From contig NC_087246.1 of NCBI RefSeq assembly GCF_037042905.1, positions 51,026,001-51,090,000 of the forward strand: a stretch of 64,000 nucleotides of DNA, given 5' to 3'. Source of the DNA: Lytechinus pictus (taxonomy: Eukaryota). The position numbers and the translations under genes were made by a program. The first letter of the stretch is position 1. Every line of letters starts with the position of its first letter. The notes beneath the pieces were generated by a model. The model made no database searches, was not told the DNA's origin, and saw nothing but the letters and a program-made list of their open reading frames with translations. Below, piece after piece: positions 571-58,600 of this stretch.

Positions 571-664
571 ACGATTATGAAGATAATAATTCCTTCCTTC
601 CCTTGCTGTAATGAACAGAACGAACGAGGTATTTTTTATTGTTTGCCTTTTTTCTCTTTTTCAG

Positions 665-1789
665 ATCTTAGTTTACTGTAAATACAACGACGATGAGGAT
701 GATGAAGATTGCGACTCGAGGATAAACGACACACGTAGAAAAGCTCCGATTGAATCAGACCGTCCGGAGGTCGTGCGAGAGACATACGCCGACATCGCTG
801 ATGCTTGCTTCAAACATGGAGGCCACGTGATCAATGCTGTACAGATCGTTGACATGCTGACGGTGGCAGCGCTGTATCTTCAGTTGTCGGGTGCCCTACT
901 GGTAGATACCTTTCCGCAAGCTGGATTAAACCGGTTTCTCTGGACAGCCATAACCGTCGTCGTGCTTCTTCCAACGGTGCTCTTCAAGAATCTTACCAGG
1001 ATATCGTGGTTGAGCCTGGTGGCTTTAATCGCTCTTGCCGTTATGTTATCAAGCGTAGTGTGGTACAGCTTTGGTCGTAGCATCCGCTGGAAGATGGAGA
1101 GCATCCCGCCGTTTTCCATCGAGCCCTTCGCCATCAGCGCCGCCATGATATCTCTCAATTTTGGGGCGCAGTTCTTGATGCCGGGAGTGGAAGGCAGTAT
1201 GCGTGAACCTTCAAAATTCAACACGATGCTCAACTACTCCTACATAGTTACAGGGTTTCTCAACGTTGGCTTCTCCCTCTTCGCCTTCTTGACCTTTGTG
1301 GAAGACACGCAGGAGTTCGTCACTTACAACATGCCTCGAGGACCACTCCAAGCTACTGTCAGTTGTCTTTTCGTCATCAAGTCTTTACTTACTTACCCGC
1401 TTATGATTTTTGTCATCGTGAGTACCGTCGACTCAATGAAGTTGTCGTTCCTGCCGCGTTGTTATCCAGAACAAGATGAGCGTTGTCCTCCTATTTGGGC
1501 CATCATTTTTAGGGTTATCCTAGTAGGCATGTCTTTCCTGATGGCTGTGGCAATTCCGCACTTCTCGTTGCTGATGGGTGTTTCTGGGAGTCTCACCGTA
1601 CCATGGCTGGACTATATATTTCCGTGTCTGTTTTATTTAAAGCTGAGAAAGACCAATATAGGAATGCTGGAGAAAGCATATCTTTGGTTCATCATCTTGC
1701 TAGGTGGAATAGCAGGTGCCGTAGGACTTTTCTATTCGTGTAGAGCTATGGTTAGGGCAATGTTAGGAGAAATCAATGATGGCTGGTAG
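665..1789 (+). CDS. Terminal coding exon of an SLC32/VIAAT (VGAT)-like amino-acid transporter (Aa_trans family); 5' exon(s) lie upstream, probably outside the window
   Basis: Polypyrimidine tract plus CAG acceptor at 662-664 (phase 0). The translation is collinear with the VGAT C-terminal part: VRETYADIADAC, FKNLTRISWLS, PGVEGSMREPSKF, KSLLTYPL, IPHFSLLMGVSGSLT. The ATG at 611 lies in intron sequence. Confidence 0.9.
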   Translation: MLVYCKYNDDEDDEDCDSRINDTRRKAPIESDRPEVVRETYADIADACFKHGGHVINAVQIVDMLTVAALYLQLSGALLVDTFPQAGLNRFLWTAITVVVLLPTVLFKNLTRISWLSLVALIALAVMLSSVVWYSFGRSIRWKMESIPPFSIEPFAISAAMISLNFGAQFLMPGVEGSMREPSKFNTMLNYSYIVTGFLNVGFSLFAFLTFVEDTQEFVTYNMPRGPLQATVSCLFVIKSLLTYPLMIFVIVSTVDSMKLSFLPRCYPEQDERCPPIWAIIFRVILVGMSFLMAVAIPHFSLLMGVSGSLTVPWLDYIFPCLFYLKLRKTNIGMLEKAYLWFIILLGGIAGAVGLFYSCRAMVRAMLGEINDGW

Positions 1790-5771: not shown

Positions 5772-6021
5772 NNNNNNNNNNNNNNNNNNNNNNNNNNNNN
5801 NNNNNNNNNNNNNNNNNNNNNNNNNNNNNNNNNNNNNNNNNNNNNNNNNNNNNNNNNNNNNNNNNNNNNNNNNNNNNNNNNNNNNNNNNNNNNNNNNNNN
5901 NNNNNNNNNNNNNNNNNNNNNNNNNNNNNNNNNNNNNNNNNNNNNNNNNNNNNNNNNNNNNNNNNNNNNNNNNNNNNNNNNNNNNNNNNNNNNNNNNNNN
6001 NNNNNNNNNNNNNNNNNNNNN
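5772..6021. other. Assembly gap (250 N)
   Basis: Run of N characters. Confidence 1.
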
Positions 6022-9381: not shown

Positions 9382-11418
9382 ATGGTAGAACATCTAGATC
9401 AAAACAGCTCGACACAAACCACTCAGGTCTTCTCTGAAGACGCTGAAAATATCAGTCAAGACCGTCTTTCTCTCGACCCAGAGATTGATCCTCACGATCA
9501 TCAAATTGGACCTGATGTAGGAACTAGAACGTCCTCTGGTGATCGGAACCATTGGGTCACTGATCTAGTATCAAGGCAGAGAATCTCCCAGGGAACTAGT
9601 GCTTACCGTGTCGTTATGTATGTCATGGCAGCTACAGGACTCATCGTCATATATGTCCCGTTTCTTCCCCGGAAACATTCTGCAAAGACATTCTTCGCTA
9701 TGCTTTACGTTCTTCGTAATATATTTATGAATTTATTAGTAGTATCTGCACTCGTAGGTATGATATGGTTGACTCTGAGGGTAAAGAAATTGCATGAACG
9801 GGGATTGGTGCTGTGGCCTCAACGTTGTAAGCACTGTTTGAACATAATATGTCAGATCAAGTTCCGTGATTCAACCGTTGCCGTCGAGATTGGTGGCTTT
9901 TCCCCAAAACTGATTCCTGGTTCACTGAGTGAAGAACAACTTGACAACATCACAAGAGTCAGCAATGTAACGCTGAACATTTCGTATATATTTTCAGGTC
10001 TGGCTTTCCTATCCATACCACCTATCATAATGACAAATATCATGTGTTTAAACCAACACTCACCACACAACCCGACAGCCCAGACCAACAAGGAGCTGAC
10101 AATGCAGTTGTTGGTTGTTTTAAATCAATTTATCTATCTCTACATCTTGAATTTTCACTTCATCCCTACCTTTAAGGATGCCCACTTTGTTTCAGTGCCC
10201 AAGATATGGTGGTCTTTTGTCCTCCTAATCCAGGTTGCTATTTGGACATCCATCCAGAAGCTTTTGCGACCATTTGCAATTCTTGCTAATGGTGAGCACC
10301 GCACACCCTACCCGTGTCCGATGAATTCCACTTTAGGTGAAGTGCTTCATGGTATCAGTGATATTTCGCTAACATTTACAGTTGAACTTCCGGTTATGAT
10401 GGCACTTTTGCTAATTGAAATGTGGTCACAGATTCTCCCAGAGCATGTCAAATCCCTGATGAAAGACACAAACACATGCCAATCTACCATCTATATTAAA
10501 TCCATCACTCGACGTTCAAATTGGATCACTCTAAGAAACTTTACCAACAGAATTCTGAACAGAAGAAAGCTTTCCAAAAACCTATCTGAATTGTCACCAT
10601 TATTCAGTAATAATATTGAGATGGAGTCTGTACGTAGTTGTAATTTAGGCAACAGAATGAGTCATAATTTTACTTCAAGTTACCATCACCATTATAACAA
10701 GACTCTGAGAAACGAAACAGAAAAAGTATTATCAATAACTCTGCTGCTATGCGTCATATACTTTGGAATAAGCAATTACCTTCTATCTGGAGAAAATTAC
10801 CCCTATGCTGGCATCAACACCCAATGGTTTTTAGAAATGATGTTTTTCACGCCAGCGTTGCTGGTAATCATAAAACAGGCGAAAGTAACTAAAAAGGGCA
10901 ATCGAAATTTATCGACCAGATATGATGTACGTTCTGTCAACACCCCATCAGAAAAAAATAACATAATGCTTTTAATTTCTCTCTCTGGAGCATGTCTGTT
11001 TGATATGTTTTGTTTCGTGTCATCTTTAGGGAACCTCGTGTCAGGTCCTGAACTGTTATCCCATGAGGTGGTTCTTAACCTGATAAGCGTATTAAGCTGT
11101 GTCTTCGGTCTTCTTTGTAAATGCATCCAATCTACCTTTATCTTGAAGGTAGAGCATCAGCAACCCAAAGACTACCAGGCAATGAGATGGACATCCCTAT
11201 GCTTACTGGCTGTAGGAATGGTCAATGCTACACAGTGGTTATTGGATAGTTTGACCCATGAAGAAGAGTGGCCTGTCTTGAGTATGTTCTTTGAAGGAAA
11301 TGTAGGACTGGTCATCGGGATGATATTTGTACCATTCCTACATTTGTACGAACTCCATATTGCCATCATGGCATATGAAATCTATAAACACAAACGAGAA
11401 GAAAAATTGTGCATCTGA
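9382..11418 (+). CDS. Otopetrin-like (OTOP family) proton channel, 678 aa, single coding exon
   Basis: Twelve hydrophobic segments in two 6-TM halves. Family motifs: LTFTVELPVMMALLLIEMW (cf. PFxIEYxxxxxxxLYxMW), IQSTFIL, VNATQW (cf. CNxxLW), VPFLHLYELH (cf. LPxxIFYRxH). Good Kozak context gtcATGG with an in-frame upstream stop. Confidence 0.85.
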   Translation: MVEHLDQNSSTQTTQVFSEDAENISQDRLSLDPEIDPHDHQIGPDVGTRTSSGDRNHWVTDLVSRQRISQGTSAYRVVMYVMAATGLIVIYVPFLPRKHSAKTFFAMLYVLRNIFMNLLVVSALVGMIWLTLRVKKLHERGLVLWPQRCKHCLNIICQIKFRDSTVAVEIGGFSPKLIPGSLSEEQLDNITRVSNVTLNISYIFSGLAFLSIPPIIMTNIMCLNQHSPHNPTAQTNKELTMQLLVVLNQFIYLYILNFHFIPTFKDAHFVSVPKIWWSFVLLIQVAIWTSIQKLLRPFAILANGEHRTPYPCPMNSTLGEVLHGISDISLTFTVELPVMMALLLIEMWSQILPEHVKSLMKDTNTCQSTIYIKSITRRSNWITLRNFTNRILNRRKLSKNLSELSPLFSNNIEMESVRSCNLGNRMSHNFTSSYHHHYNKTLRNETEKVLSITLLLCVIYFGISNYLLSGENYPYAGINTQWFLEMMFFTPALLVIIKQAKVTKKGNRNLSTRYDVRSVNTPSEKNNIMLLISLSGACLFDMFCFVSSLGNLVSGPELLSHEVVLNLISVLSCVFGLLCKCIQSTFILKVEHQQPKDYQAMRWTSLCLLAVGMVNATQWLLDSLTHEEEWPVLSMFFEGNVGLVIGMIFVPFLHLYELHIAIMAYEIYKHKREEKLCI

Positions 11419-25932: not shown

Positions 25933-28900
25933 TCACACGGTGTAGATGTAACCGCCGGTTTCCGGACTGGTATCTGTCGCCGGGTTGAAGGATCCATACA
26001 ACCGGCAAGCGCCAGTGACCTTTGACCAGGTGAACGCCTTGCAAATCGCGTTGGCTTCTTGTGCGCATGCGCTCGCGCAGTTGAAGGTGGTACGGGTGAA
26101 ATATTCCTGATCGGGTTCCTGTGTAATCCTATTACCCTTGGAGGAGAAGCTGAATGATGACGATCGGTATACATCATGACAAGCTGGGTACGATAAAAAA
26201 AAAGGGGGGACACAACATTAAAGGGATGGTCCAGTCTGGAAATATTTATATATCAATAAATAAAGTAACATTCACAGAGCAAAATGCTGAAAATTTGATC
26301 AAAATCGGATAACAAATAACAGAGATATTGAATTTTTAAGATTTGCATTATTCCGGTAAAACAGTTCCTGGCATGTCTTTGTGAATTTTCATTAGGTGGG
26401 CTGATGATGTCATATCTCCACTTGTTCTTTTGTATTTTATTATTTGAAATTAGGTTTATTCAATTTTTTTCTACCAAGAGCTAAAACAATTGGATTGACA
26501 ACTGATTAAGTGCATTAGTTATTTATTGCTGCAACTTATTTCATCATAATGGAGACACATCATTTACACATGTATGAAAAAATGAAACATTAATGCTTTC
26601 ATGTAATAACATAAGAAAAAGGAAAGTGGGAATGTGACATCATCGGCCACCTAATGAATATTCATGACGATGTGCATATATCTGTTTTCACAAAATATTG
26701 ATAAACTTTAAAATTCAATAACTTCCTTACTTGTTATCCGATTTTGATGATTTTTTCAGTATTTTGCTATGTGAATTTTACTCTATTCATTTAGACATAA
26801 ATATTTTCAGCACGGACCATCCCTTTAATATATCAAAATGCATGTACAAACAAATACAACTGTTGGTACACTTAACAGAAAAATTAATGTAATTCAATAT
26901 CATATTTCATATTCATCTGTGAAGTGCATGATAGACTATACTTTTTCTCAGTATGGCAAAAGCTATTATAGGGGACAATTATATATCTATCATCAGCTTA
27001 CTAGCTTTTCTTGGTGACAACATTAAATACATATTTTCATAACAAAGAAAACTGTATGATCGAATGTGATGGAAAAAAATGGCCGACGAATTATGACTTT
27101 TCGAATTACAAGGCTCGTAATATTCACATTTCGTCTCATTGTTAACTGGCTAATGCATGACATGGCTTCTCCAGAAAGAATAATTACAATATTGTTGGAG
27201 AGAAAATAAAAATAAAACATTGGAAACACCTAGTGGGTTATTAATGTTACACCTGAAGTTGGGAAAGGTGCAAAAATGCACCTCTTTGTTATAACTTTGC
27301 ACGCGAAAAAAAGTTTTTAGGGCGCATAATGTAGCTAGCTGCACCAAAAAAGGTCACTATTTTCTTTTCTTTTTTTCTCTCTCACCTTTTTCAATGTTTT
27401 TGTATATTAAAAGCGCTATTTTTAAATATGAAATAATAATGGGAACTTTAATCTACAAGTCTGACTTCCCAGCAGTCCACTCGATCCAAGCTGTTATATA
27501 AACTGCCTATTGTCAGTGGCGTAACAGGCGGGGGGAGGCAGGGGGAAGAATGCCCCCCTGGCGGAGCTCACCGGGAAAATGAAAAAATATATATTTATAA
27601 AAAACGGAGGAAAAAGAAAAGAGAGAAGAAAGAAAGAATTCTAAAGAAAGAAAAAAGGGTAAGGAAAAGACAAGGAAGAAAAAGAGGAAAGAGAAAAAGA
27701 AGAAAAAGTGAAAGGGAAAAGGGGAGAAGAAAAGTGAAAGAACATAAAGAGAAGAAAGGTAAAACGGAAGAAAATAAGAACAAAATGAGTCAGGCGCGTA
27801 GCCAGGGGGGCGGTGGGGGCGGTAGCCCCCCAAAAAGAAAAAAAGAAGGGAAAAAAGAGAGGAGAAAAGGAAAAGCGAAGGAAGGAAAGGGAAGAAAGGT
27901 AGCTTTGTGGGTTTTTCCTTTTATTCTTTTTTTTCTCAAAAAAGAAACTCCTTCACTCTTGCTCTTAATTTATGTATATGAATTTTGCTTCCGCGCTGCG
28001 CGCGGTTAAATGACAATATTGCAGTTCTCCTTTGTTTTCCTCACCCTTTCTCTAACCCTGTTTTTCCACCTCAGCTATATGTGTTTCTTGCCAGTTAAAG
28101 TTCAAATATATATATTTAGGGCATGAAATTAGAGTAAGGATAGACCGAAGTATATAAAATTATGGTCGGGTCGGCTCCGGGCGGGTAAAATTATTTTATC
28201 AATTTCTGCCGTCATCTCCATATAGGCAACTTCTCCCGCTTTTCAGCTCATTATACTAAACAACCATAATTTGGGGGCAAACAAGTTCCTAATTTAAAAA
28301 GAGGAAGGTATAAAACTCGTGTCGTATTAAATAAAAAAAGTACAATACTTTTTATCAAATTCTACTAAACTTCATGTCATTTCCCTACACATTTATCTCC
28401 TGTCCTGTTTTGCGCCCTCAGTTTGAAATTTTGAATGACACTTAAATTTCTTTATCATTCAAAATGAAGCGCATCAGGATAAGTCAAAGAAATTATACAT
28501 CATCCTGTTTTATATAATTTAAATAAATCACAGAAGTTTCAACTTTTTGCGCACCATTTTCCTTGCAATGAAGTTCAATAGTCTTAGAGGGAAAACAATT
28601 GACGAAACGTCCGCCCTTTGAAATTTCAGAGTTTCATTGCTAAGCGCAGGGAGGAATATCTTCCTCCCGGCATATATCCTTCTTCTCCTCTGCACTGTCG
28701 CTAAATATTGTTTGTAATCAAATCTGATCTTTCCAAGGGAAGTATTCAATGCTGATAACTTAGAGAATACCCTTTTCTCGGGACCCCTTCTTTAAAAAAA
28801 ATGATAAAACGCTTTGGCTTCCGCGCTTTGCGCAGGGTCAATACATTTTTTTTTTTTCCTCCATTTTATCCCTTTTTTGTGCGTTCACAATCACTTTTGA

Positions 28901-31900
28901 AAACAAGGTTCAAAATCACAATATAGTCAACTGAATTGGGGCTAATATAGGTACTAGAGACAAGAGAAACGGCTCCTTTCCATTTTGATTTATGAAACAC
29001 CGAAAGCTTCGCGCGGGAGGGGGAAACTCCCCCTCCCTGCACCCACCCCCTAGGGAGCGCGCTTCGCGCGCTCTTTAAGTGTTGGCACGCTTCGCGTGCA
29101 TTTACCGCCCCTCCAAAATGAAATCCTGGCTACGCGGTTGTAATGAGTAAGCACCTAATCATCCCGAAATACTAACAAATGGGTGAGAAAGAGAAAAAAT
29201 AATCATTAAAAGATGGCAAAATGGAGCGGGAATTTATTGCGGGAAAGGGAAAGAAAGAGGCAAAAAGAAACGGCAAAACGAGGTAGAATGGAATGAGGTA
29301 AAATTATAAGGGAAGAGCTAAACTGCATGCTCGCTCGGCACCTTTTAGAAAATATTCCTTCATTTCCCATATTAAATGTTGTGCCCAATCAAAATATTTG
29401 GTTTGTTACGCCACCGCGTTGAAATAATGTGTTTTGTAAAACATGATATCCGTGATTTGATTGAAAATAGCGGCCACCCTTCAAGGTTTAATGTGGCTAA
29501 ATCTCGAGAGGTTCCTGGGCTCCGCCCCTGGACACCACCCACATGGCACTGGCGTACAAAATAATGGAAGGGTTTGGTGGTATAGCCCCCAAAAGTTCTA
29601 CGACCAAGAACAAAAAGGAAAAGGAGAACAGAAATAAAAAGATCGGAAAGTGTAAGATATGATGTTATGTTTTTTTAATCTGTCAAAATATATCACTAAG
29701 TAAAATTGTAATGATTTTTTTTTAATTCTCGCTCGCTTCGCTCGCTCGGTAATTTTATTAAGAAACTTTTGCCACACGCGCCATGATGTACCCCTCATTT
29801 CTTTTACTCATCACTCTAGCCACTCCGGCATAGAGCTTCGCGCCAACAATCATGAAAAATCCTGTTCATATCGTGATATGACCGGGAAATTTTGGGCTCT
29901 TGCCCCCTCCCCGGCCACCGACCCCTGTTACGCCCCTGCCTATTGTACATTACGAACTCATTGTTTAATTCATTTTAATGTCTTACATTATTTTACAATG
30001 CATACGATCTCACTAGGATTATTTTTTTGGGGGGGATCTGGAAATGAATTAAATGAAATATAATATGCACCATCATGTTATTTGCACCAATATTATGCAT
30101 AGTATAGATGGACATAATTGCGCTCATTGGCAACCCTTTGGGTGCGGGTATTGTACACCTTCGGTTTAATTTGAATCCCAATTTCTTTGTATGTGTGCAT
30201 TGGAAATGGAGATAAACAAGTGGAATAAAAGCACTTACCGTTATCTCCCGTGAACATGGAATCGTAGTCGATACAACGTAGTCGTTTGAATCCCTGGGCA
30301 CCAACTGACGACCCTGCAGTCTCAGCACAGAAGGAGTTCACGAGAGCAAAGTATGAGGCACTGAGATCAGAGACCATGATCTCATAGGTTGCGTCCATTA
30401 CCAAATCGTAATATAGGGCACAACTTCCGTTGTGCTGTTTTGATTCATACATAGGCTCAAGTTGTGGTTGTCTGGTATCATTCCATACCCTGATGACATT
30501 GAACACTCCATTAAATTCACAGGACGTTACGACCGTGATGAAGCCCGACGAGACGCCGTAAGTTGTGGCGTCTGGGACATAGATGTAAGTGTCGCCACTG
30601 ATGTATTGCTCCTCGGGAGGAATAGTTACCATGGCAGCGTTCACTGTTTTCAAGGCAACGACTTGGATCGGTTTATTGCTTGTGAGACGCGCCAGAGAGA
30701 GGTTTGTGCATTCTACGACAGTTTCTCCCTCGTCGAGAAGCGCAGTGATCACGGTGTCCAAGTTCATGGTGACGGTGGTGCCGTTTCTTCCTGCGACAAT
30801 CATGACGCAGAAGTCCTCGTCGTCTCCCGGAAACGAAGGAACGTTGAATACTGTACCCCAGCGATCAAACGGGGTCAGTTGCTCTATGACAGCGTCGCAA
30901 TCTTGATCCCAGTGTTCGTGTCCGGGTGAGAAGGCACAAGGTGTCCCACAAACCACAGACACTGGATGATCAGCCAGGAGGCGGGATCCACTGAAATCAT
31001 TCGTAAGTATCTTGATCAAAATATTCTTCCACGGTTCCAGGCAGAATTCTTTCTCATCCCCGCGATCGTAGTTTCCTCCGTTATAAACTTGAGCCCGGCC
31101 ATTGAATCGTATGTTCACTCGAGTTGAAGAGTTCATTGACGAGATGGTGGCATACCCGGGGGTCTGGCCGGTCATCGTAACGAGGAAGTACTCCTGTCCC
31201 AAATATTCTTCTGGAATTACACTGAAAGTTCCGTAGGAATCAACAGTTCTCTGAAATATCGGAAGGGTTCGATTGATATGAGATTTATAACGAGTATTTA
31301 CTTCCTTAAACTCAACACCGTAACCACCACCACCGTCATCAACAACAACCACATCAACATGGATGACGCTACAGGGGGCAGGGGTGACTGTCCGTATGAT
31401 TCTCCTCGAGGAATATATACAGAATGAGGAAGAGAGAAATGGAAGAAGAATAAAGAGAGGTCTGAGTGTGTCAAATAACTCATTGCCCCTGTTATTTATC
31501 TGAAAAAATGATGACGTTACCTTTGAAGTCATCATTTTCCCGCTGTCAAAATATTGAAGAATATATATCCATGACCATAAAAAAGATGCAACAGGAGAAA
31601 ACCAATATTTGTGTCCTTTTTATAACCTTAAAGTTTAATTCAATCTCAAGTAATTACGTCTTACACACTTTTTGTATATGAATTATAAATGAGTCATTAG
31701 TAATAGCTAGTCTGACTATCTAAATGTTTTCTTATAATTATGTGTTTTCTCATTTTAAAGGTGTGGCAACGTCTCATGCATAATTATGCTTACATTGCCA
31801 TACCTCTGTATGTCTGCCTCTGACATACAATCATTTGTGTAAATGAACATGTACCTCTTTTCATGTAAAAAAATATTAAATTTACTGTTGTAATGGTCAC

Positions 31901-33686
31901 ATTGTGTATATTGTCACGACATATGCAGGCACAAACAAACAAACGAATAAATAAATAAATAATATAATACAAACAAGACAATATGGAACCCCCCCCCCCT
32001 TCAAATTACAAAATTAATCTAAGACTTTAGTCTAGACTCACCGGCGAAGGAACACCGTTGAATGCATGTATCATGGAGTCCGCCTCAGTTTTGATATGAA
32101 ATACATCTTCGAGTGCATTCTTTGGAGGTACACCATGTGTATTTGGTATGGGAACCTCTACAAAGGCCAATCCTGATGCTATATTATGAAAGGGAAGGAA
32201 AAGATCCAAGCTTTGAAGGCAAGAGTCCAGCTCAAGGGGAGGGACATGTACACCAGCTATATAGGACCCTATAACACAAAGGTTTTCGATTGATCGCTAA
32301 ATGAAACAGCCTATCAAGATCATCGTTGCATGCACACTTGCTCGAGTAGACTGTCTAGGAACCAATCAGAATTGTTCTTTCAAATACGGGGTTCTGATAA
32401 CCATTCTGGAACATATTTCTCAGGAGTTTGTCATTTATAGTGTTAAAGAATTAGTAATATTTTTGCGCGGACTTCGAATATAAACGCAAATTAACTTTAC
32501 TGCCTATAATGAAGGGGGGGGGGTGCAAGAAGCCAAGAATACATTTAAGGTTCGAATTTTTCAGTAAAGCACAAAGTCTTGTGATCGTTTCCAACAATTA
32601 AATGATTACTGGTCTTCTTGTTGCAAGAGAAAGTATAATTTAATCTTGTTTGATTGCAATTTGGAATTGGAATTTGAAAATATATCACCAACAAATTCTT
32701 CGCCGCACATCTTAGAAAAACTTGAGAGATGGCTCGGAGAGAAGGGATCCGTCTCCGTCTTTCTGAATATTACTTAAGATGTTTCACAACACTTCAGATA
32801 GGAACAAAATTGAAGACCAATATTTAATAACTGAATACTAAAAAAAAACCAACAACGTTTGACCCCGTTTCGTTATTCAGGACTTTCGCATTTACTACGG
32901 AAACACTCTCTGCAACGCACCAATTCCTTTGAAAATGCAAGTCAAGTCACAATAGTGAGCTGAGAGGCTTTTGTCGAAAGTTGGTGGACCGGGACAGCAT
33001 CGGAATCTCTTGACTCTGGACAACGACATATTTGCAATTGTTCGTCTGGTGCAAACCTGCGGATGATCAGCTGTCCCAGTCAAATTTCAACAAAAGCTTC
33101 TCAGATCTCCTTTGTGATGTTAATTGCATTTTCAAAGGAATTATTGACGCGTTGTAGATTGTTTCCCCGTAGTAAATGCGAAAACTTCCCATTTAATTTG
33201 GTTAGAACTGTCTATAGTAACACCCACACTGCTGTAGATTAATACTTACGATTGAGTATATCCACCTGCGGCTGTGTTAGATTTCTTGACTGTATCTGGA
33301 AGCCAAAATCCCCTTGAGATTGTAGATCGCGACCGTTTGGAATATAACCAAACACAAAACGGGAAGAGAAGAAAGATGAATTGGCATTTTCTCCAACTAA
33401 ATGAAAGAGAATGAAGACAGAAGAAAATCATTGGAGACTAAAATTTGGAAAACCAACGAGAATGAAATAACCGAACTAATATTGAACAGGAAAGAAGCAA
33501 ACTGATATTGCTAATAAAGTATACAAAATCATTCAGATAATAATCTGAAATTGGACTAGACTAATAGTGAATAAGATGGAATCTACCTGCGCAGCTTCTT
33601 CCGTGGGTTGAGTCCAGATACTCGGCAAGAATCAAGAATGCTGCAACAACAATGGCTTTCGATGTAACGGGTGAAAAACTGGCCAT
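25933..33686 (-). CDS. Secreted IgGFc-binding N-terminal-domain + PAN/Apple protein, 548 aa; exons 33686-33587, 33396-33250, 32178-32042, 31250-30239, 26183-25933
   Basis: All introns are GT-AG with matching phases (1,1,0,1); CDS 1647 nt. Exon 1 is signal-peptide-like (MASFSPVTSKAIVVAAFLILAEYLDSTHG). Exons 2-4 carry IgGFc_binding motifs (SRFVFGYIPN, FHIKTEADSMIHAFN, LGQEY, DFSGSRLLADHPVSVVCG, CDAVIEQLTPFDRWG, TSNKPIQV, MVTIPPEEQY). Exon 5 has the PAN pattern CASAC...CKAFTW...GACRLY then a stop. AATAAA on the minus strand at 25802-25797. Confidence 0.82.
26222..26824. mobile_element. Kolobok/T2-type MITE (family A)
   Basis: TTAA|AGGGATGGTCC...GGACCATCCCT|TTAA; about 600 bp with long subterminal inverted arms. 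Confidence 0.85.
27514..29938. mobile_element. Composite non-autonomous hAT element
   Basis: TIR CAGTGGCGTAACAGG/CCTGTTACGCCCCTG with a perfect 8-bp TSD CCTATTGT (27506-27513, 29939-29946). Confidence 0.85.
27791..29140. mobile_element. Nested hAT-type element
   Basis: TIR CAGGCGCGTAGCCAGG/CCTGGCTACGCGGTTG; TSD AAATGAGT/TAATGAGT. Confidence 0.75.
32880..33190. mobile_element. Palindromic MITE in intron 2 of the IgGFc/PAN gene
   Basis: TTTTCGCATTTACTACGG ... CCGTAGTAAATGCGAAAA inverted ends; the left arm also occurs at about 12970-13070. Confidence 0.7.
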
Positions 33687-35054
33687 GATATCCGTCAAAG
33701 AAAATTTCCAGAAGATTTATGAATATCATTAGAATAAGATTTGTCTTGCAAGAGAGAGGCTAATTGCCCGATTCTTCTAATAAATGTGACCAAGTCTTGG
33801 CTGCTTTCGAGTACAAAAAAAAAACCTATCGGAAATATAGTTCGGCCGAATACATTCGCAGTAGTTAAGGTGCGGTAAATTCTTATTCTAGTGACTAAAA
33901 ATATGAATGATTCAAGAATATGAGCAGAATCAATTTCCACTGCGCCCATTAAAGAGTGCGTCACTGCTATCTGCGCGGTGATGGTTAGAGATAGAAATTT
34001 ATCAATTTCCAATTAGATCAGACCCACCATGCCCAATCATAATTATTAACCAATAATATCGGGAATAATCTTCAACGTTCGCTGGTAAAGCGTGACCCAA
34101 GTTCATAAACGGTTTTGTCTTTCTTTTCTTCGCGGTCCCGTTACTCGTTGCATTATCAGATTATAATCATTTTGAGTGTCGTTGGAGAGGAATGTATACA
34201 AGTTGATTAGTTATAGTCAATTACAATTAACTGTTACGGGCAATTCAATCACACGTGCATCCTTTGTGAATCCGTCAACTTTGTCAATTGGACAAAGAGC
34301 AATCATTATTATTCTATCAAACTCACTAGTAAAAACATCATTACGTATGCTGGAAAAATGCAGGATATATTCTACTATTTCATTTAAACACACACGAAAA
34401 TTATTTGCTGTCCCATTATGAAGTGTTTGGATCAATATTCATTTCCCCGTCAATAATAAAATCCCAAACAGTAAGGGTTACAGTGACTAGGAGTAGTTTT
34501 GGCTAGCTGTAACATGCGTTTTTCTTCTAACTTTTGGAACAGAATGATGGCTAACAAGAAAACGCATTTCGCTGCGGTCTCTTCCGAATCTGTTCCACGT
34601 TTCTAACGATTTAAAACAGGCCTTATACATGTTCTTTGTCATATTATCGTGCTAGGTCACAGGGATTCACTATCATGCATAAGAAAATGATCACAAGGGG
34701 AGAGTTTCATCAACATTTTTTCCGACAACTTTCCTTGATCGTGATTGGCTGGGAAGCACCATCACTATGGTATTTGTCGGATTAAATGGTTGACAAGTTA
34801 TTTCATGAAACGCCCCCTAGTCGTACGTAAGTCATTCGTGAATAATTACAATCAGTATATAACGATATATACCTCCACATAGCCTATCCAAATTATGATG
34901 TGTACGTATTTGACTGAGTAGAATGAATGATAAATTCATAAATGTGACCACATCACCTACCTTTATATTTAATTTTGAATGTTTTTTTAATTTTAAGAGA
35001 TTCAGTGGAAATTTAATTTATTGCTATCCTTTTTTGATATTATTGATCCTCCAG

Positions 35055-35350
35055 TGCAAGCTACGTGAAAGGACTAGTCAGTCTGACAACTCCTCTAAGT
35101 GAGATCGAACTCTTGAAATTATCTGAAGAGATCAGTCCCAATGACTGGCGAAAGCTCTGCTTCCGACTGGGAATCGATGAACCTACTATAGCCCGAGCAG
35201 AGAGGGAAAACCAGGCCCATTTAGCTGGAGGAATCTACAAGACTTTGACACAATGGAAACAAGATCAGCTGGAGAACGAGGAGAGGGCGGTGTTGCTAGA
35301 AGCTCTTATTTCTTGTGGATTACGACGTCTGGAAGATAGACTAACAAGAG
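35055..35350 (+). CDS. NLR gene: DEATH-domain exon
   Basis: CAG acceptor at 35052-35054; donor G|GT at 35351 (phase 1, matching the next exon). The translation LSEIELLKLSEEISPNDWRKLCFRLGIDEPTIARAE...IYKTLTQWKQ...LLEALISCGL is typical of a death domain. The start exon was not identified. Confidence 0.85.
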
Positions 35351-35643
35351 GTGTTGACTCTCGATAAATTGTCTTGATTTCTTACTTACAAATAAAATAA
35401 CATCCATCATTCTGATAGTTTGATAATGACATAATTATTTAAGATTTAGTGAAGATGCTAAGATAAGTATAGACCTGGGTCTTGATACAAACAGGCATTT
35501 CAGGAGAAACTTGCATAATATTATACATAAGAGATGATCTAAATAAAAATTGGCCATCATGTCATGTACTATATCCGAGATTTTGCGAGCTATAAGCTTT
35601 GTTGATTTCACAAAACAGATTACCTTCTTTTCGTGTCTCATAG

Positions 35644-38371
35644 GTTTCCCAAAGCGCATCGGGAGTGTACATGCACAGGGACCTTTCTGCTCCACCCTCA
35701 ACGTAGCCCAATGCCGCAAGGAACTTATGAACAACTACCGGACATCGCTTTGTATGATCCTACTAGTTCCCTGGGATCCTAACTCTCACGTAGACATGAG
35801 CACCATTTTCACCAATGTCTGCCTTGTCACGGCAGACACATCTACTGCCAATAAACAATGGATCCTTCTGCCAGGTTCCTACAATGATATCCTGAAGGTT
35901 AAGGTCAACAATGCTAAACCTCTGCGGATTCTCATCGAGGGAAAGGCTGGGAGTGGGAAGACCACCTTAATGTCTAAGCTTGCCTATGACTGGATGGAGG
36001 AGTCGACAGACTCACCTCTCAAAGATGTCCCTCTCGTGTTTTGTCTTCAACTCCGTCTTCTCAACCAGGACGATGACTTCGGGGAGGCTGTAGTTCAGAA
36101 CCTGCTCCCCGAGGATACTCTCATCACTCCACAGCAGATAGAAGAGTATTCTCAGGCTAACCCAGATAAGGTGGTACTTGTTCTTGATGGATATGATGAG
36201 TTCATGTCAGACATTCAGGGTATCAAGGGCCTCGGGAACATCCTTAGAATCATCGAGAACAAGCGACTGACTGGATGTACGGTCATTGTAACGTCCAGAC
36301 CATGGAAGGCTACAGATTTCAAAGACCATCATCTTGCCAAGCACTATGCTCATATGACCGTTGAGGGCTTCTCTGATGATAGCACCAAAGTCTTCATTCG
36401 TAAGTACTTTCAAGACAACCTACAGCTTTCAGACAGCCTTTTGGCTTATCTTAAGGATAACCCTGCCATCCAGACAGTAACACCATTCCCTCTCTTCTGT
36501 GCTATGCTCTGCCAAGTATGGAAAGAAGAAAGAGATGCTCATAGAGAGGCAATGAAAGATATTGTTACACTCAGCAAGCTCTTCGATCATATCTTGAGAT
36601 ATCTCTGGGCTCACCACAACCAGAAGCACCTAACTGGACAATCTTCATCAAGGAAAGGTCAGGAATTGTCAAAGAGAATGACTCTTACTCGCAAGAGGGG
36701 AACTTCCGCTCATATAAAGATGGATATAGGCGTTTGTCTCAAGAAGATCGGGAAGATTGCTCTTGAAGGACTCATTAGTCCCGATAAGAAGCTCCAATTC
36801 AGTGAATATGACTTCAAGAAATGCCCCGATGTCCTCAAGGTAGCATGTTCTGTTGGGCTTCTTATCCGTCAGAAGAGTAACCCAACAAGTTCACGAAGAT
36901 TATCAAGACAAGATTCCATTCCTCATCACGGGATCACTTTCTTCCATAAACTGGCTCAAGAAAAGTGTGCTGGAATTTACCTGTCTTCCATGTGCACAAA
37001 GCAACCGAAGAAATTCGTGCAAACCCTCAAAGATGTCTACATATTGACCAGAGCAGACGAGTTCCGATATGTCCTGCAATTTGCCTGCGGTGAAGACCTT
37101 TACACCGCAAAGAAGATCCTCCGACACATGCCGAATATCACGCCTTATCAAAAGTTGGCATTAGAGTGCAACTTTGAGAGTCAGTCTAAGATCAAGTCAA
37201 ACAAGAGACTATCGAAGTTCTTTGTGACACAACGACTGTTCATGACCGGAAGACCGTCTGTCTACTCATTCAACGCCCTTGAATACTATATGAATAACTG
37301 TGAGATTCTCAGTCCGGAAGATGCTCCAGTCGCCTTCACATACTTTTCCACCGATGGCGTTGGGCCAGCCCAGCTTGGTAAGGTCACCAGCATCTTGAAC
37401 CAACCTCAACTGCAGTTTTTAATCCAGTTTAACATGGAACAGTCAAGAATCGAAGGCCCTGATGTCAAAGGCTTCATTGACTCACTCTCCCAGAAAGAGT
37501 TCATTGGTGTCCTAATGATGTCTTCAAACGTTGCTGGTCAACAGTTTGTGGAAAGTCTTCTTGAAATCCCTAAAGATGGCCTTAAATCAATGGTCATGAT
37601 GTACCTGCCAGTGCTCGATTCCAGGTGGGCCACCGATATCCTGAAGAAACTTCCTTCCATCTGCCCTAGAATCGGAGCACTGGAAGCTTCTTTCACACCC
37701 GAAGAGATTGCAGAAAGTGAGGATTCAGATAACCCGGAGGAAGACACAGAAGCTGAGATCTTTCCGTGTGACACAGGAAAATCATCATCAACACAATCAA
37801 TGGAAGGCAGAGATGTTGAATGCTGCTCATTTTCTGAACTCGCCACACTGTCGCTTAAGGGGTGTGTTCTCTGTCAGAAAGGATCAATGCAACTGGCATC
37901 AACCCTGTCGCTGGCGAAAAATCTGGAAAAGCTTCACTTGACGAAGCCATCGTTGCATTGTTCTTTCTACTCTCATCTGACCATCCTTGAATGTCTTCGT
38001 GAGTTCTCAGTAATTGATTACACATTCGGAAAGTTCAATCTAGACAAGTTCCTTGAGAAGTGCCCCATCTTGGAAGACGTCTATGTTGCCGCCATAGAGA
38101 ACCATCCCCACGATGTAAACGGTGTCATGAAGTCCCTTACCAATGCAATAGCTTACACCCCTGTGCTGAGGAGTATCACTCTCTGGTTTCCTGGTGAAGG
38201 TAGTTGCCGAGATGGTAGGATAGAGGATGGGGTCTTCAAGGAGTTCTGTGACGCAATCCTGCGGACCTCTCAACTCTCAAAGCTTCTCCTATGGCACGTT
38301 CCCCTCGGAACAGAACTGGTTATGAAGCTACTGGAAGTATGCAAGCAGCACAGGAATCTTATTACCATCAG
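35644..38371 (+). CDS. NLR gene: large NACHT-WHD-LRR exon
   Basis: Acceptor ctcatag|GT. Walker A GKAGSGKTT, Walker B VVLVLDGYDEF, VIVTSRP, VEGFS, PLFCAMLC, WHD FFHKLAQE, and degenerate LRRs (LATLSLKGC, LEKLHL, LSKLLLWHVPL). Donor AG|gtacat at 38372. Confidence 0.92.
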
Positions 38372-38989
38372 GTACATGTTTAAAACATAATACATTATTT
38401 GTGTCCAAAGTTTATGTTATTAAGCACAATGACTGAAAGAGATGTATCAACAGGTATAATCCATGGGGCACGACAATTTTACGTGATACAATTGTCAAAA
38501 ACAAAGCCTCCAAGCCCAAGGAAGATTTTGTGAAACTGTATGATAAAAAACAACACCACTGATCTCACACACCCTCGTCACAATCTTCTAATTTTTGTCT
38601 GTGTAATTTTATCTTTTTTTAAGATATGATTTTCTAACCCCATACTGGTATGGTTTAAAAATGTAACAGCCATTTTGGTAATTTTTTTGTATATTCGGCC
38701 CAGCCAATTGTTAAGTGATCTTTGTTCAACGTTTGATAATTTTTCGTTTCTTCTTCATTGACAAAGAACTAACATTGAAAATATATACATGTATATACTT
38801 GGTTTGATTGGCGATTATCAAAATGTTGAATATTTTTTAAACGAAAACGACCCCTGTTTATATTTGCTTGCACTTGATCAACTGTAGAAGTCGAACATTC
38901 CTGAAGTGAGTGCTAACCATCTTGATTTCATGTTTGGTAAAATCTTAAACCTTTTTAAAAATAGGTATACTTATAATTCATTTTAACAG

Positions 38990-55600: not shown

Positions 55601-58600
55601 TTTTCTGTAAGAAATGGCTGCCGGTATATTATGCATCTTCGCTTGCCTAATTCTTTGGAATGTTTGTCTTGGAGCAGATAATTTTGCAGATGAAAGAAGA
55701 TTTCTCCACCTTCAATGTGCTTCTATTTCTAAGACTACAGCCAAATGCTCTCATCTGAACCTCACTTCTGTACCCCAATCTCTACCAAATACCTTAGAAA
55801 TACTGGACCTGTCATTTAACAATCTCACAGCACTTCACAATGCATCATTTGAAAAGTACGACCTTCTTCGGATTCTGAATATCGCTCACAATTTCATCCA
55901 CGTCATCGAGAGCGGATCTTTTGCAAATCTCCGGGAAATTGAGACAATCATTTTGAATAACAACGTCATTCACGAACTGTCTGCAACTTTTCACATGAAC
56001 GATTCAAAACAAATAACTTTGATTCTGTCTCATAATGAAATGAGGGGAATCGCCCATCTGAATGGACTCTGTTTTACAGAGACAAAGAAAGAGAATACTG
56101 GAGATTCAGGGTCGAGAAATATAACCCTGATTGATTTCTCACACAACAATTTGACATCAGTTGAAGAAAAAGACTTTGCCTCTTTCAGTAACTGCTCTAT
56201 TTATAAATTCAAAATTGGGAATAATAAGCTGACACGTCTTCCAATGAATGTGTTTTCTGGATTATCTAGGGTGAGAAAACTTGATGTGAGCCATATAAAC
56301 CTTCAACAGTTTGAAGTTTCTTCCTTCTTAGGAATTGAAAGTATAATAGAGATTACATTGGAAGGATCACACATAAGGTCTATTGTACCGTTGAATGACT
56401 CCGCTTGCATCTCAAGTGGACAATTCACTAAACTTGAAATATTAAATCTGAGAGACAACAAAATAGAACAAGTTCCTGACTACACATTCTTGGCATTCAA
56501 GTACCTAGAGATCCTTGATCTGGGTACAAACAGAATAAGTTTTATATCAAACAAATCTTTCTGTGAAATGAGAAAGTTAAGGGTATTGAGTTTGCCAAGA
56601 AACAAAATCAAAAGTCTCCAGGATGGTGCTTTTTCTTGTCTTGGAAATTTAGAATACATCACATTGGCACAGAACAACTTGTTTATCTTGGAACCAGCTT
56701 GGTTTGCTCATTGTAAATCACTCAAAATTCTGAATCTTTTTCGGAGCAACATCAATGAAATTAAAGATGGTTCCTGGATCACACCCAATTTACGGATACT
56801 TGACTTATCATACAACAAGCTCAGTTCTATTGGAAGACTCATGTTTACAGGTCTATCTCATTTACGCATTCTGAAATTAACGGGAAATAACCAACTCTAC
56901 ACCATCAAAGGTGATACCTTCAGTAATATGACGGCTCTCAGATCTCTTGAAATGGACAACATAGCCAGGCTAGTTCTGAATGACACTTTTGCTGAGTTAA
57001 GAAGCCTAATCTACTTGGACTTTTCTTTCCTTTACTCCCATGGGGCACAAATTGCCTCTGTACACCAATTTACACACACCTCTGCATTACAAACATTAAA
57101 TATGTCATTCTGTTTTATCCATTCTCATGATTTGGTGAACACTAAAACAAAAGGATCACTTTTTGATGGGCTAACATCCCTTCGCACTCTTCGAATGGTA
57201 GGAAATAATCTTGTTGGTTTGCCCAATGTCTCTTGGATGTTTTCTCCCCTACAGCGAATGGAAATCCTTGATTTAGGCCATTGTCAACTGCATTCACTGA
57301 CATCAGAGTTATTTAAGAACCTGAGTAGCCTACAAGAACTCAGACTCACTAACAACGAGCTGGTGGACATATCTGAACATGCATTCCAGAATTTGCACAA
57401 TTTGCATAATCTTCTTCTCCAATTCAACAAAATAAACTCAATAGGTAAAAACTTGTTTAAAGAAACCGCTAATCTACGACGGCTGCTCCTAAATAGCAAC
57501 CAGATATCTATGGTAGCACCTAATACAATAATACCATCACACTTGAAAGTGTTTAACATTGCAGGAAACCAACTGATCTGCAACTGTCAACTAACTTGGT
57601 TCATGCAGTGGCTCCGTTCTACAAATGTCTCGTTGGGACCACAGAATGAAACATTGTGTTCCATTCATTCATTCAGTGAACTTAAGAACAAGCCAGTTTG
57701 GACATTTCATCCAGAAAAATACTGTGGAATCAACACCCTCCTACTTACTGGTGTTAGTTTTGCAATCATTGCAGTCTCCCTACTCTGTCTTCTGGTCTAT
57801 TACAAGCGCTGGTGGTTCGACCACAAGATATTCCTTCTGAAACTAGCCATCATTGGCTATGATGAAATCACAGAGGATGCTGATCCAGATGACTATGAAT
57901 ACCAGCTTAACATCATGTTCCATGACGATGACACCGAGTGGGTTAATGAAAATATGAGGCCTGCACTGGAAGAAAGGATGCCTCATCTGCAGAACATTGC
58001 CTTCGGAGATGAAGCCCTTCATCCAGGGATGTACTATCTCAATGCCTTAAATCATAACCTTGATAACAGCTTCAAGACAGCCTTGTTGATCAGTAACAAG
58101 TCAGTGGGTGATGCTTGGTTCATGACCAAGCTACGGATGGCCGTTGAGCATGTGAATGACACCAAGTTAGACAAGATCATCTTGATATTCCTAGAGGACA
58201 TCAAGCAAGCCAACTTACCATATCTTGTAAGACTCTTGCTAAGTAGGAACAAACCTTATTTGTTGGTTACAGAAGATGAAGATGGTCAAGAGTTGTTCTG
58301 GGCTCAGTTTGAAAAAGAAATGAGGACCAACAAGGTTCTCAACAGTGTTATTCCAACTTAAACCTGATGCAACACCAAGAGTTAAAATCCTGTATATGGG
58401 GTTTCTCAAAGGCTTATGCTTGGATTTTTTTCATGAGCATGAAAAACTTAACACAACTTCAGTTTTTAATGTTACTGTTTCTGAAAGCACTGGATTAGCA
58501 ATTTTAGAAAATTCAAAATTCAAAATCCTATCATTTCATCTTTTTTTAAAAGTTGATATATTTTTATTGACTCCCAAATGACCTTTGACATTGCCTATTG

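Follow-up and report, generated by a model that had tools for sequence, protein, structure and literature searches.

What does a sea-urchin locus encode when the list of open reading frames (ORFs) shows only a single minus-strand frame there, of 480 amino acids (aa), at 30093..31535? We address this question for a stretch of Lytechinus pictus DNA of 64,000 nucleotides (RefSeq assembly GCF_037042905.1, contig NC_087246.1, positions 51,026,001 to 51,090,000 of the forward strand; hereafter the window, numbered from its first letter), whose base composition is that of AT-rich eukaryotic DNA. The locus is an intact, transcribed five-exon gene, LOC129254049, whose 548-aa product carries an N-terminal FCGBP-N module (Pfam IgGFc_binding) and a C-terminal PAN module. 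Judging from its sequence and its relatives, we propose with moderate confidence that this product may be a secreted, two-headed extracellular binding or bridging protein, and that it is probably neither an IgG-Fc receptor nor an orthologue of FCGBP.

Gene model and transcripts

Joining the five minus-strand exons of the window sequence (Table 1) gives 1647 nt in frame, which translate into 548 aa before a TGA stop, with AG before each internal exon, GT after each donor and phases that are consistent throughout. This spliced product is 100% identical to XP_054748475.2 (uncharacterized protein LOC129254049 isoform X1, Lytechinus pictus), and together the splicing and the identity bear out the exons, coordinates, phases and length given in a preliminary description of this DNA. 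The same description called the gene hidden, which holds only relative to the ORF track: RefSeq has an identical model, and the gene, already annotated but unstudied, belongs to a known domain family. Literature searches with the LOC identifiers, with PF17517 and with IgGFc-binding protein combined with sea urchin or tube feet returned nothing on the gene or its architecture. There is no second copy of the product in the window, where the tblastn matches are the five exons alone.

A protein search with exon 4 returned LOC129254049 from Lytechinus pictus at 98% identity, in the form of XP_054748475.1 (547 aa), which differs from the 548-aa product by 8 residues and one 1-residue indel. The 3-nt indel of XP_054748475.1 and many of the same base differences recur in contigs of runs X2 and X17, and run X1 carries the window allele. 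The differences between XP_054748475.1 and XP_054748475.2 therefore look like ordinary allelic variation.

Transcript contigs were aligned to positions 26090-32089 of the window (6000 letters), so that the joints of introns 3 and 4 were covered. The joint of intron 4 (26183/30239), which skips 4055 nt bounded by CT..AC (GT..AG on the minus strand), is present in one contig each of runs X1, X2 and X17, that is, in three runs from two studies, with a side of 94 nt. That of intron 3 (31250/32042; 791 nt skipped, CT..AC) is found in contigs of runs X1 and X2, from one study. Both are junctions that the preliminary description had predicted. The X1 contig extends 230 nt past exon 4, a size that fits exon 3 and part of exon 2. 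In the X17 contig intron 4 is spliced and intron 3 (31251-32041) is retained, matching RefSeq isoforms X2 and X3, which begin inside intron 3 and lack a signal peptide; this retention probably reflects incomplete splicing rather than a functional isoform.

These joints also bear on where the gene ends. The open frame runs 49 codons beyond the exon-4 donor, and it could be argued from this that the true gene finishes by read-through of the donor, with the PAN exon being part of some other transcript. However, the contigs of three runs link 30239 directly to 26183, which rules out read-through of the 480-aa ORF to its stop at 30093; the three RefSeq isoforms (X1-X3) all terminate in the PAN exon, contig depth is low or nil across the non-repeat parts of intron 4, and the PAN exon, in frame with exon 4, is under purifying selection, as set out below. 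We consider this alternative extremely improbable. The PAN exon as a separate gene is likewise rejected.

Repeats inside intron 4 (26290-26889 and 27700-29290) show many internal joints and a summed contig depth of up to ~37,000 in transcriptome runs. A transposon origin is probable, and these repeats probably make up most of the difference in intron length between L. pictus and L. variegatus (4055 vs ~655 nt).

The two modules and the selection acting on them

We count 16 cysteines and 7 N-glycosylation sequons in the 548-aa protein. Its sole hydrophobic segment is N-terminal (peak hydrophobicity in residues 1-25) and there is no transmembrane segment, in agreement with the preliminary description, which gave a signal exon and saw no such segment. 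Exon 1 encodes a signal-like peptide, with AIVVAAFLILA as its h-region and a likely cleavage site near THG/RS, together with a conserved Cys32; small residues stand at -1 and -3 before RSC, and the paralogues described below have ARA/QTC at the aligned place. The FCGBP-N module begins at about residue 30, directly after the signal-like segment, and is joined to the PAN module by a Ser-rich linker of ~35 residues with low predicted order, the whole protein ending 86 residues past the FCGBP-N module. Pfam finds PF17517 and PF00024 only, with no VWD-C8-TIL units in the product. There is also no run rich in Pro, Thr and Ser (PTS), whereas paralogues P0007, P0154 and P0156 have one.

The core of the FCGBP-N module lies in exon 4, where PF17517 scores 124.7 bits (cut-off 25.6; E 5.8e-36; profile positions 3-246 of 297), and the whole protein gives the same result. 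This match spans residues 137-375 only, and exons 2 and 3 scanned alone gave no Pfam match. Alignments with FCGBP-N homologues run from residue 29, where the paralogue alignment of exon 2 starts, to ~462, and the DNA of exon 2 is 94% identical in L. variegatus. An AlphaFold2 model built from a 68-homologue alignment is all-beta, with a predicted local distance difference test score (pLDDT) mostly >90 over residues 140-450. ESM Atlas clusters that are 97-100% PF17517, including mollusc secreted proteins and bacterial type IX secretion system (T9SS) surface proteins, match residues ~36-515 of this model with template-modelling (TM) scores of 0.66-0.77. The paralogue alignment and the Atlas matches, which cover residues ~30-460, agree with the earlier placement of the domain over exons 2-4, and we accordingly describe the module as a predicted beta-rich unit of ~430 residues covering these three exons.

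Profile searches of PDB sequences yielded no solved relative of FCGBP-N, and Foldseek with the whole model against PDB and AFDB Swiss-Prot returned generic beta-sandwich chains only, at TM scores of ~0.1. The best VIA-align match (Z 8.9) was to a small cupin-like double-stranded beta-helix over residues 142-257, with sandwich matches for residues 343-446; these are too weak to name a fold relative.

FCGBP_N was defined by Lang et al. 2016 (PMC4948705) as a domain present in 176 invertebrate and 564 bacterial proteins, N-terminal in position, with many invertebrate architectures, predicted signal peptides in about half of such proteins and no combination with VWD observed in Echinodermata. A recent paper states that IgG binding has been contradicted for purified FCGBP and that the name may mislead, and describes the role of the N domain as unclear (PMC11796319). 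Given this dispute, the name of PF17517 tells us nothing of function in a sea urchin. To our knowledge, IgG is absent from these animals.

The second module is found in the terminal exon, where Pfam PF00024 (PAN_1) matches exon 5 alone with 34.9 bits (cut-off 21.4; E 1.4e-8), compared with 31.1 bits in the L. variegatus orthologue and 27.9-28.4 bits in the paralogues. This match, taken with the 26183/30239 joint, upholds the view that an exon 4 kb away encodes a PAN module. Its core cysteines C501, C505, C513 and C525 (C-x3-C ... C ... C) are invariant in orthologues and paralogues; the motif had been given as CASAC-x6-CKAFTW, and the actual spacer is 7 residues. No cysteine follows C525, and the upstream C467 has no C-terminal partner inside the module. 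The original PAN/Apple label is therefore correct in its first half only: the core has four cysteines where an Apple domain has six, and because the outer cysteine pair, and with it the third disulfide, is missing, we assign the module to PAN and reject Apple. A profile search of PDB with the PAN tail gave weak matches only, none better than E 0.016, and PAN/Apple chains account for almost every one, including the HGF N domain, MIC4, kallikrein, factor XI and a fungal oxidase with the PAN cysteine pattern in the matched repeats.

Both modules have been maintained in the related species L. variegatus, where each of the five exons is present at the locus (GCA_018143015.1; CM031016.1:30186357-30201087) and their joining yields a collinear frame of 548 codons; the splice signals are shared, except that the donor of intron 2 is GC instead of GT. 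For this species pair, the ratio of nonsynonymous to synonymous change (dN/dS) is 0.38 over the whole protein (dN 0.031, dS 0.081), 0.40 over the FCGBP-N module (dN 0.033, dS 0.081), 0.18 over the PAN tail (dN 0.020, dS 0.112) and 0.14 over the PAN core (dN 0.017, dS 0.128). Both parts of the protein are therefore under purifying selection. All 16 cysteines are retained in L. variegatus, including six that are specific to the lineage. The L. variegatus RefSeq models are 431 aa long and N-terminally truncated. That species shows two near-identical gene models, LOC121407808 and, as the second locus on the same chromosome, LOC121407606, where the L. pictus genome shows one; the pair may have arisen by recent duplication or may reflect duplication in the assembly.

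Relatives in sea urchins and beyond

FCGBP-N-like exons occur at no fewer than 25 loci of the L. pictus genome. At least six such exons are clustered on contig 11 between 14.4 and 16.6 Mb, a local family expansion. An exhaustive search of 1.8 billion representatives gave 694 relatives, and beyond the gene's own cluster the closest single-module (full-length) relatives, at 34% identity, are Lytechinus "mucin-22-like" proteins. Alignment-based word-indexed protein searches returned 6-8 proteins, a number that probably results from low-complexity saturation and says little about distribution.

Two paralogue lineages are represented among these proteins. In the first (P0007, P0154 and P0156) FCGBP-N is followed by a Thr-rich PTS stretch and then a C-terminal PAN; in the second (P0003, P0155 and P0175) it is followed by a tail, either a long Ser/Thr one or a hydrophobic one, without PAN. 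A maximum-likelihood tree places the LOC129254049 clade on a long stem (1.37) as sister to all remaining lineages of the sea-urchin group, with support of 100/99. The clade and two related lineages have so far turned up in sea urchins alone. PAN_1 occurs in three of the 68 smaller FCGBP-N representatives, all three from sea urchins. Among the 49 larger representatives the partners include VWD, C8, TIL, HYR, EGF, AMOP, 7tm_2/GPS, ZP, fn3, Sushi, NIDO and TSP1, and PAN is not in the 25 partner families listed for them, beside which there are 13 further single-member families.

A detailed comparison with the mucin-22-like paralogues XP_041474683.1 (L. variegatus) and XP_054749551.1 (LOC129255023; L. 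pictus, contig C1, 10.70 Mb) shows that the two-domain architecture is not unique, since the same two modules occur there with a mucin spacer between them. Shared features are a signal peptide, a Cys-x-VG motif, an FCGBP-N module that is 31-35% identical over ~430 residues and, at the C-terminus, a four-cysteine PAN. In the paralogue on C1 the large FCGBP-N exon encodes 339 aa, compared with 337 in LOC129254049, and its phase-1 end falls at the aligned position; PAN is encoded by a separate terminal exon ~3.5 kb downstream; the two PANs are 32% identical (pairwise E 1e-7). The paralogues differ in having a Thr/Pro-rich PTS exon of at least 69 aa between the modules, where LOC129254049 has only its Ser-rich linker, and the PAN exon is in phase 0 in the mucin-22-like paralogue but in phase 1 in LOC129254049, whose lineage is further set apart by six additional cysteines and by an N-terminal sandwich that is shorter. 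The ORF list holds no Thr-rich ORF of at least 40 aa within intron 4. The simplest reading of the combined sequence comparisons is that the FCGBP-N...PAN arrangement may have had a single origin, the PTS exon being gained or lost afterwards.

More distant systems share one module or the other. Human FCGBP, the IgGFc-binding protein of intestinal mucus, is also secreted and has FCGBP_N (PF17517) straight after its signal peptide; however, its 13 VWD-C8-TIL units, GDPH autocleavage and disulfide dimers are all absent from the LOC129254049 product, and we reject orthology with FCGBP on the lack of VWD-C8-TIL units. PAN/Apple proteins (the N domains of HGF and plasminogen, the apple domains of factor XI and prekallikrein, apicomplexan MIC4 and a fungal oxidase) have in common with it the PAN_1 match, the core cysteine pattern and a predicted helix followed by a beta-hairpin, whereas LOC129254049 has a single PAN, C-terminal to an unrelated large domain, without the outer cysteine pair and with a fold modelled at low confidence. 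Other FCGBP-N fusions, namely bacterial T9SS surface proteins, mollusc FCGBP-N proteins with or without TSP1/LDLa, and sea-urchin adhesion G-protein-coupled receptors (GPCRs), one of which, in Diadema, carries the module, have the same N-terminal module of ~420 residues but different partners: PKD, CHU_C or Por_Secre_tail in bacteria, and 7tm_2/GPS, VWD, ZP, EGF and HYR, among others, in animals.

The long stem raises the possibility that the gene is a lineage-specific duplicate with little or no function, a fast-diverging, weakly transcribed copy of a mucin-like gene that has lost its PTS spacer. The 1.37 changes per site on that branch would fit such a history, as would the failure of protein searches to return an orthologue outside Lytechinus, the low transcript depth and the intron-retaining, signal-less isoforms. 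Nevertheless, both Lytechinus species have an intact, collinear frame and conserved splice sites, the dN/dS values (0.38 overall and ~0.14-0.18 in the PAN tail) are those of a constrained protein, 16 of 16 cysteines are kept in L. variegatus with the six lineage-specific ones among them, and transcripts of two independent studies are correctly spliced. We regard a duplicate of this kind as quite unlikely.

Proposed function and neighbouring genes

In the model that we propose, the LOC129254049 product would be a secreted, disulfide-rich, extracellular two-headed binder. One ligand would be held by its FCGBP-N head and another, which could be a glycan or a protein, by its PAN head, so that components of mucus, glycocalyx, matrix or a similar extracellular coat would be bridged or decorated. 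LOC129254049 would then represent a short-spacer, non-mucin version of the mucin-like paralogues. The phrase "recognition or mucosal protein" in the preliminary description was likewise something inferred.

Several observations weigh against this model. A binding function for FCGBP-N is assumed, because there is no solved relative and the best structural match covers residues 142-257 only. The PAN module was modelled with a pLDDT of 43 alone (6-row alignment) and 35-55 in the whole protein (where 3 of 68 rows cover PAN), and Foldseek with the low-confidence model of the module alone (pLDDT 43) returned no match. The order of elements in that model is strand, helix, hairpin, strand, as in PAN, and we treat its low confidence as inconclusive and do not count it against the PAN assignment itself. 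The cleavage of the signal peptide was judged by eye. Expression is low in the runs analysed, with a contig depth of 4-11; the ~6% of run X19 that was covered gave few raw reads on exon 4, and the raw reads on exons were too few for joints or strand. Finally, the PAN exons of LOC129254049 and its mucin-22-like paralogue differ in phase, and therefore a clean loss of the mucin exon does not explain the form of LOC129254049.

The surrounding genes suggest another role, in which the product would be a soluble innate-immune recognition factor (an opsonin or pattern-recognition lectin) that binds microbial surfaces and is co-regulated with a head-to-head NLR gene. A Death-like frame and a NACHT ORF lie on the plus strand ~1.4 kb from the ATG of LOC129254049 and divergent from it, the corresponding L. 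variegatus locus likewise has an NLR gene on its opposite strand, and a Toll-like receptor (TLR) ORF is present in the window (Table 1). The 8 residues and one indel that separate two L. pictus alleles and the relaxed dN/dS of 0.40 in FCGBP-N would also be in keeping with an immune function, and the PAN/Apple modules of apicomplexan microneme proteins bind host glycans. However, sea urchins have hundreds of NLR and TLR genes, and for this reason their adjacency is weak evidence. Furthermore, dN/dS is below 1, with no positive selection at this level of resolution, and high polymorphism is general in sea-urchin genomes. On these grounds we judge the immune role unlikely and retain the two-headed coat binder as our preferred reading.

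In L. variegatus, a 1051-aa Death+NACHT gene on the opposite strand spans the whole 14.7-kb locus, and the FCGBP-N/PAN gene is annotated as nested within it.

Table 1. Exons and intron 4 of LOC129254049, followed by other features of the window (window coordinates)
Feature	Positions	Strand	Description
Exon 1	33587..33686	-	ATG at 33686; residues 1-33; donor GT after 33587; exon present in L. variegatus
Exon 2	33250..33396	-	147 nt; start of FCGBP-N module, N-terminal beta-sandwich part; AG acceptor, GT donor
Exon 3	32042..32178	-	137 nt; FCGBP-N module continued
Exon 4	30239..31250	-	1012 nt, 337 aa; FCGBP-N / IgGFc_binding core; ends just past the conserved RLRCIDYD motif
Intron 4	26184..30238	-	4055 nt; carries repeats abundant in transcriptomes; ~655 nt in L. 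variegatus
Exon 5	25933..26183	-	251 nt, phase 1; Ser-rich linker and four-Cys PAN; TGA at 25933-25935
Aa_trans ORF (transmembrane amino-acid transporter)	611-1786	+	392 aa; E 1e-45
Run of 250 N	5772-6021		gap or masked
678-aa ORF	9382-11415	+	no Pfam match at E 0.001 or better
Death-like open frame	35047-35364	+	identified by eye
NACHT ORF	35550-38387	+	946 aa; Pfam E 1.7e-26; reads away from the FCGBP-N/PAN gene
Toll-like receptor type ORF	55614-58358	+	915 aa, intronless; many leucine-rich repeat matches; TIR_2 weak, 22.1 bits (cut-off 28)

A broader proposal would extend the two-headed arrangement to the sea-urchin FCGBP-N-spacer-PAN proteins as a group, which might form a lineage-specific secreted family of lectin-like bridging or recognition proteins whose spacer is tuned from ~35 residues to a mucin stalk. 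At present we hold this to be very doubtful. The biological interest of the locus is modest: PAN is one more partner in the known promiscuity of FCGBP-N in invertebrates and represents no new kind of system, and splice sites read from the sequence alone reproduced the RefSeq model exactly. If the broader proposal were true, a compact, soluble, mucin-free member would offer a tractable handle on the ligand of FCGBP-N, a module that is widespread in animals and gliding bacteria and for which PDB searches gave no solved structure. Being small, soluble and without a PTS run, and coming from a sea urchin amenable to genetics, the LOC129254049 product would lend itself well to both structural and ligand work.

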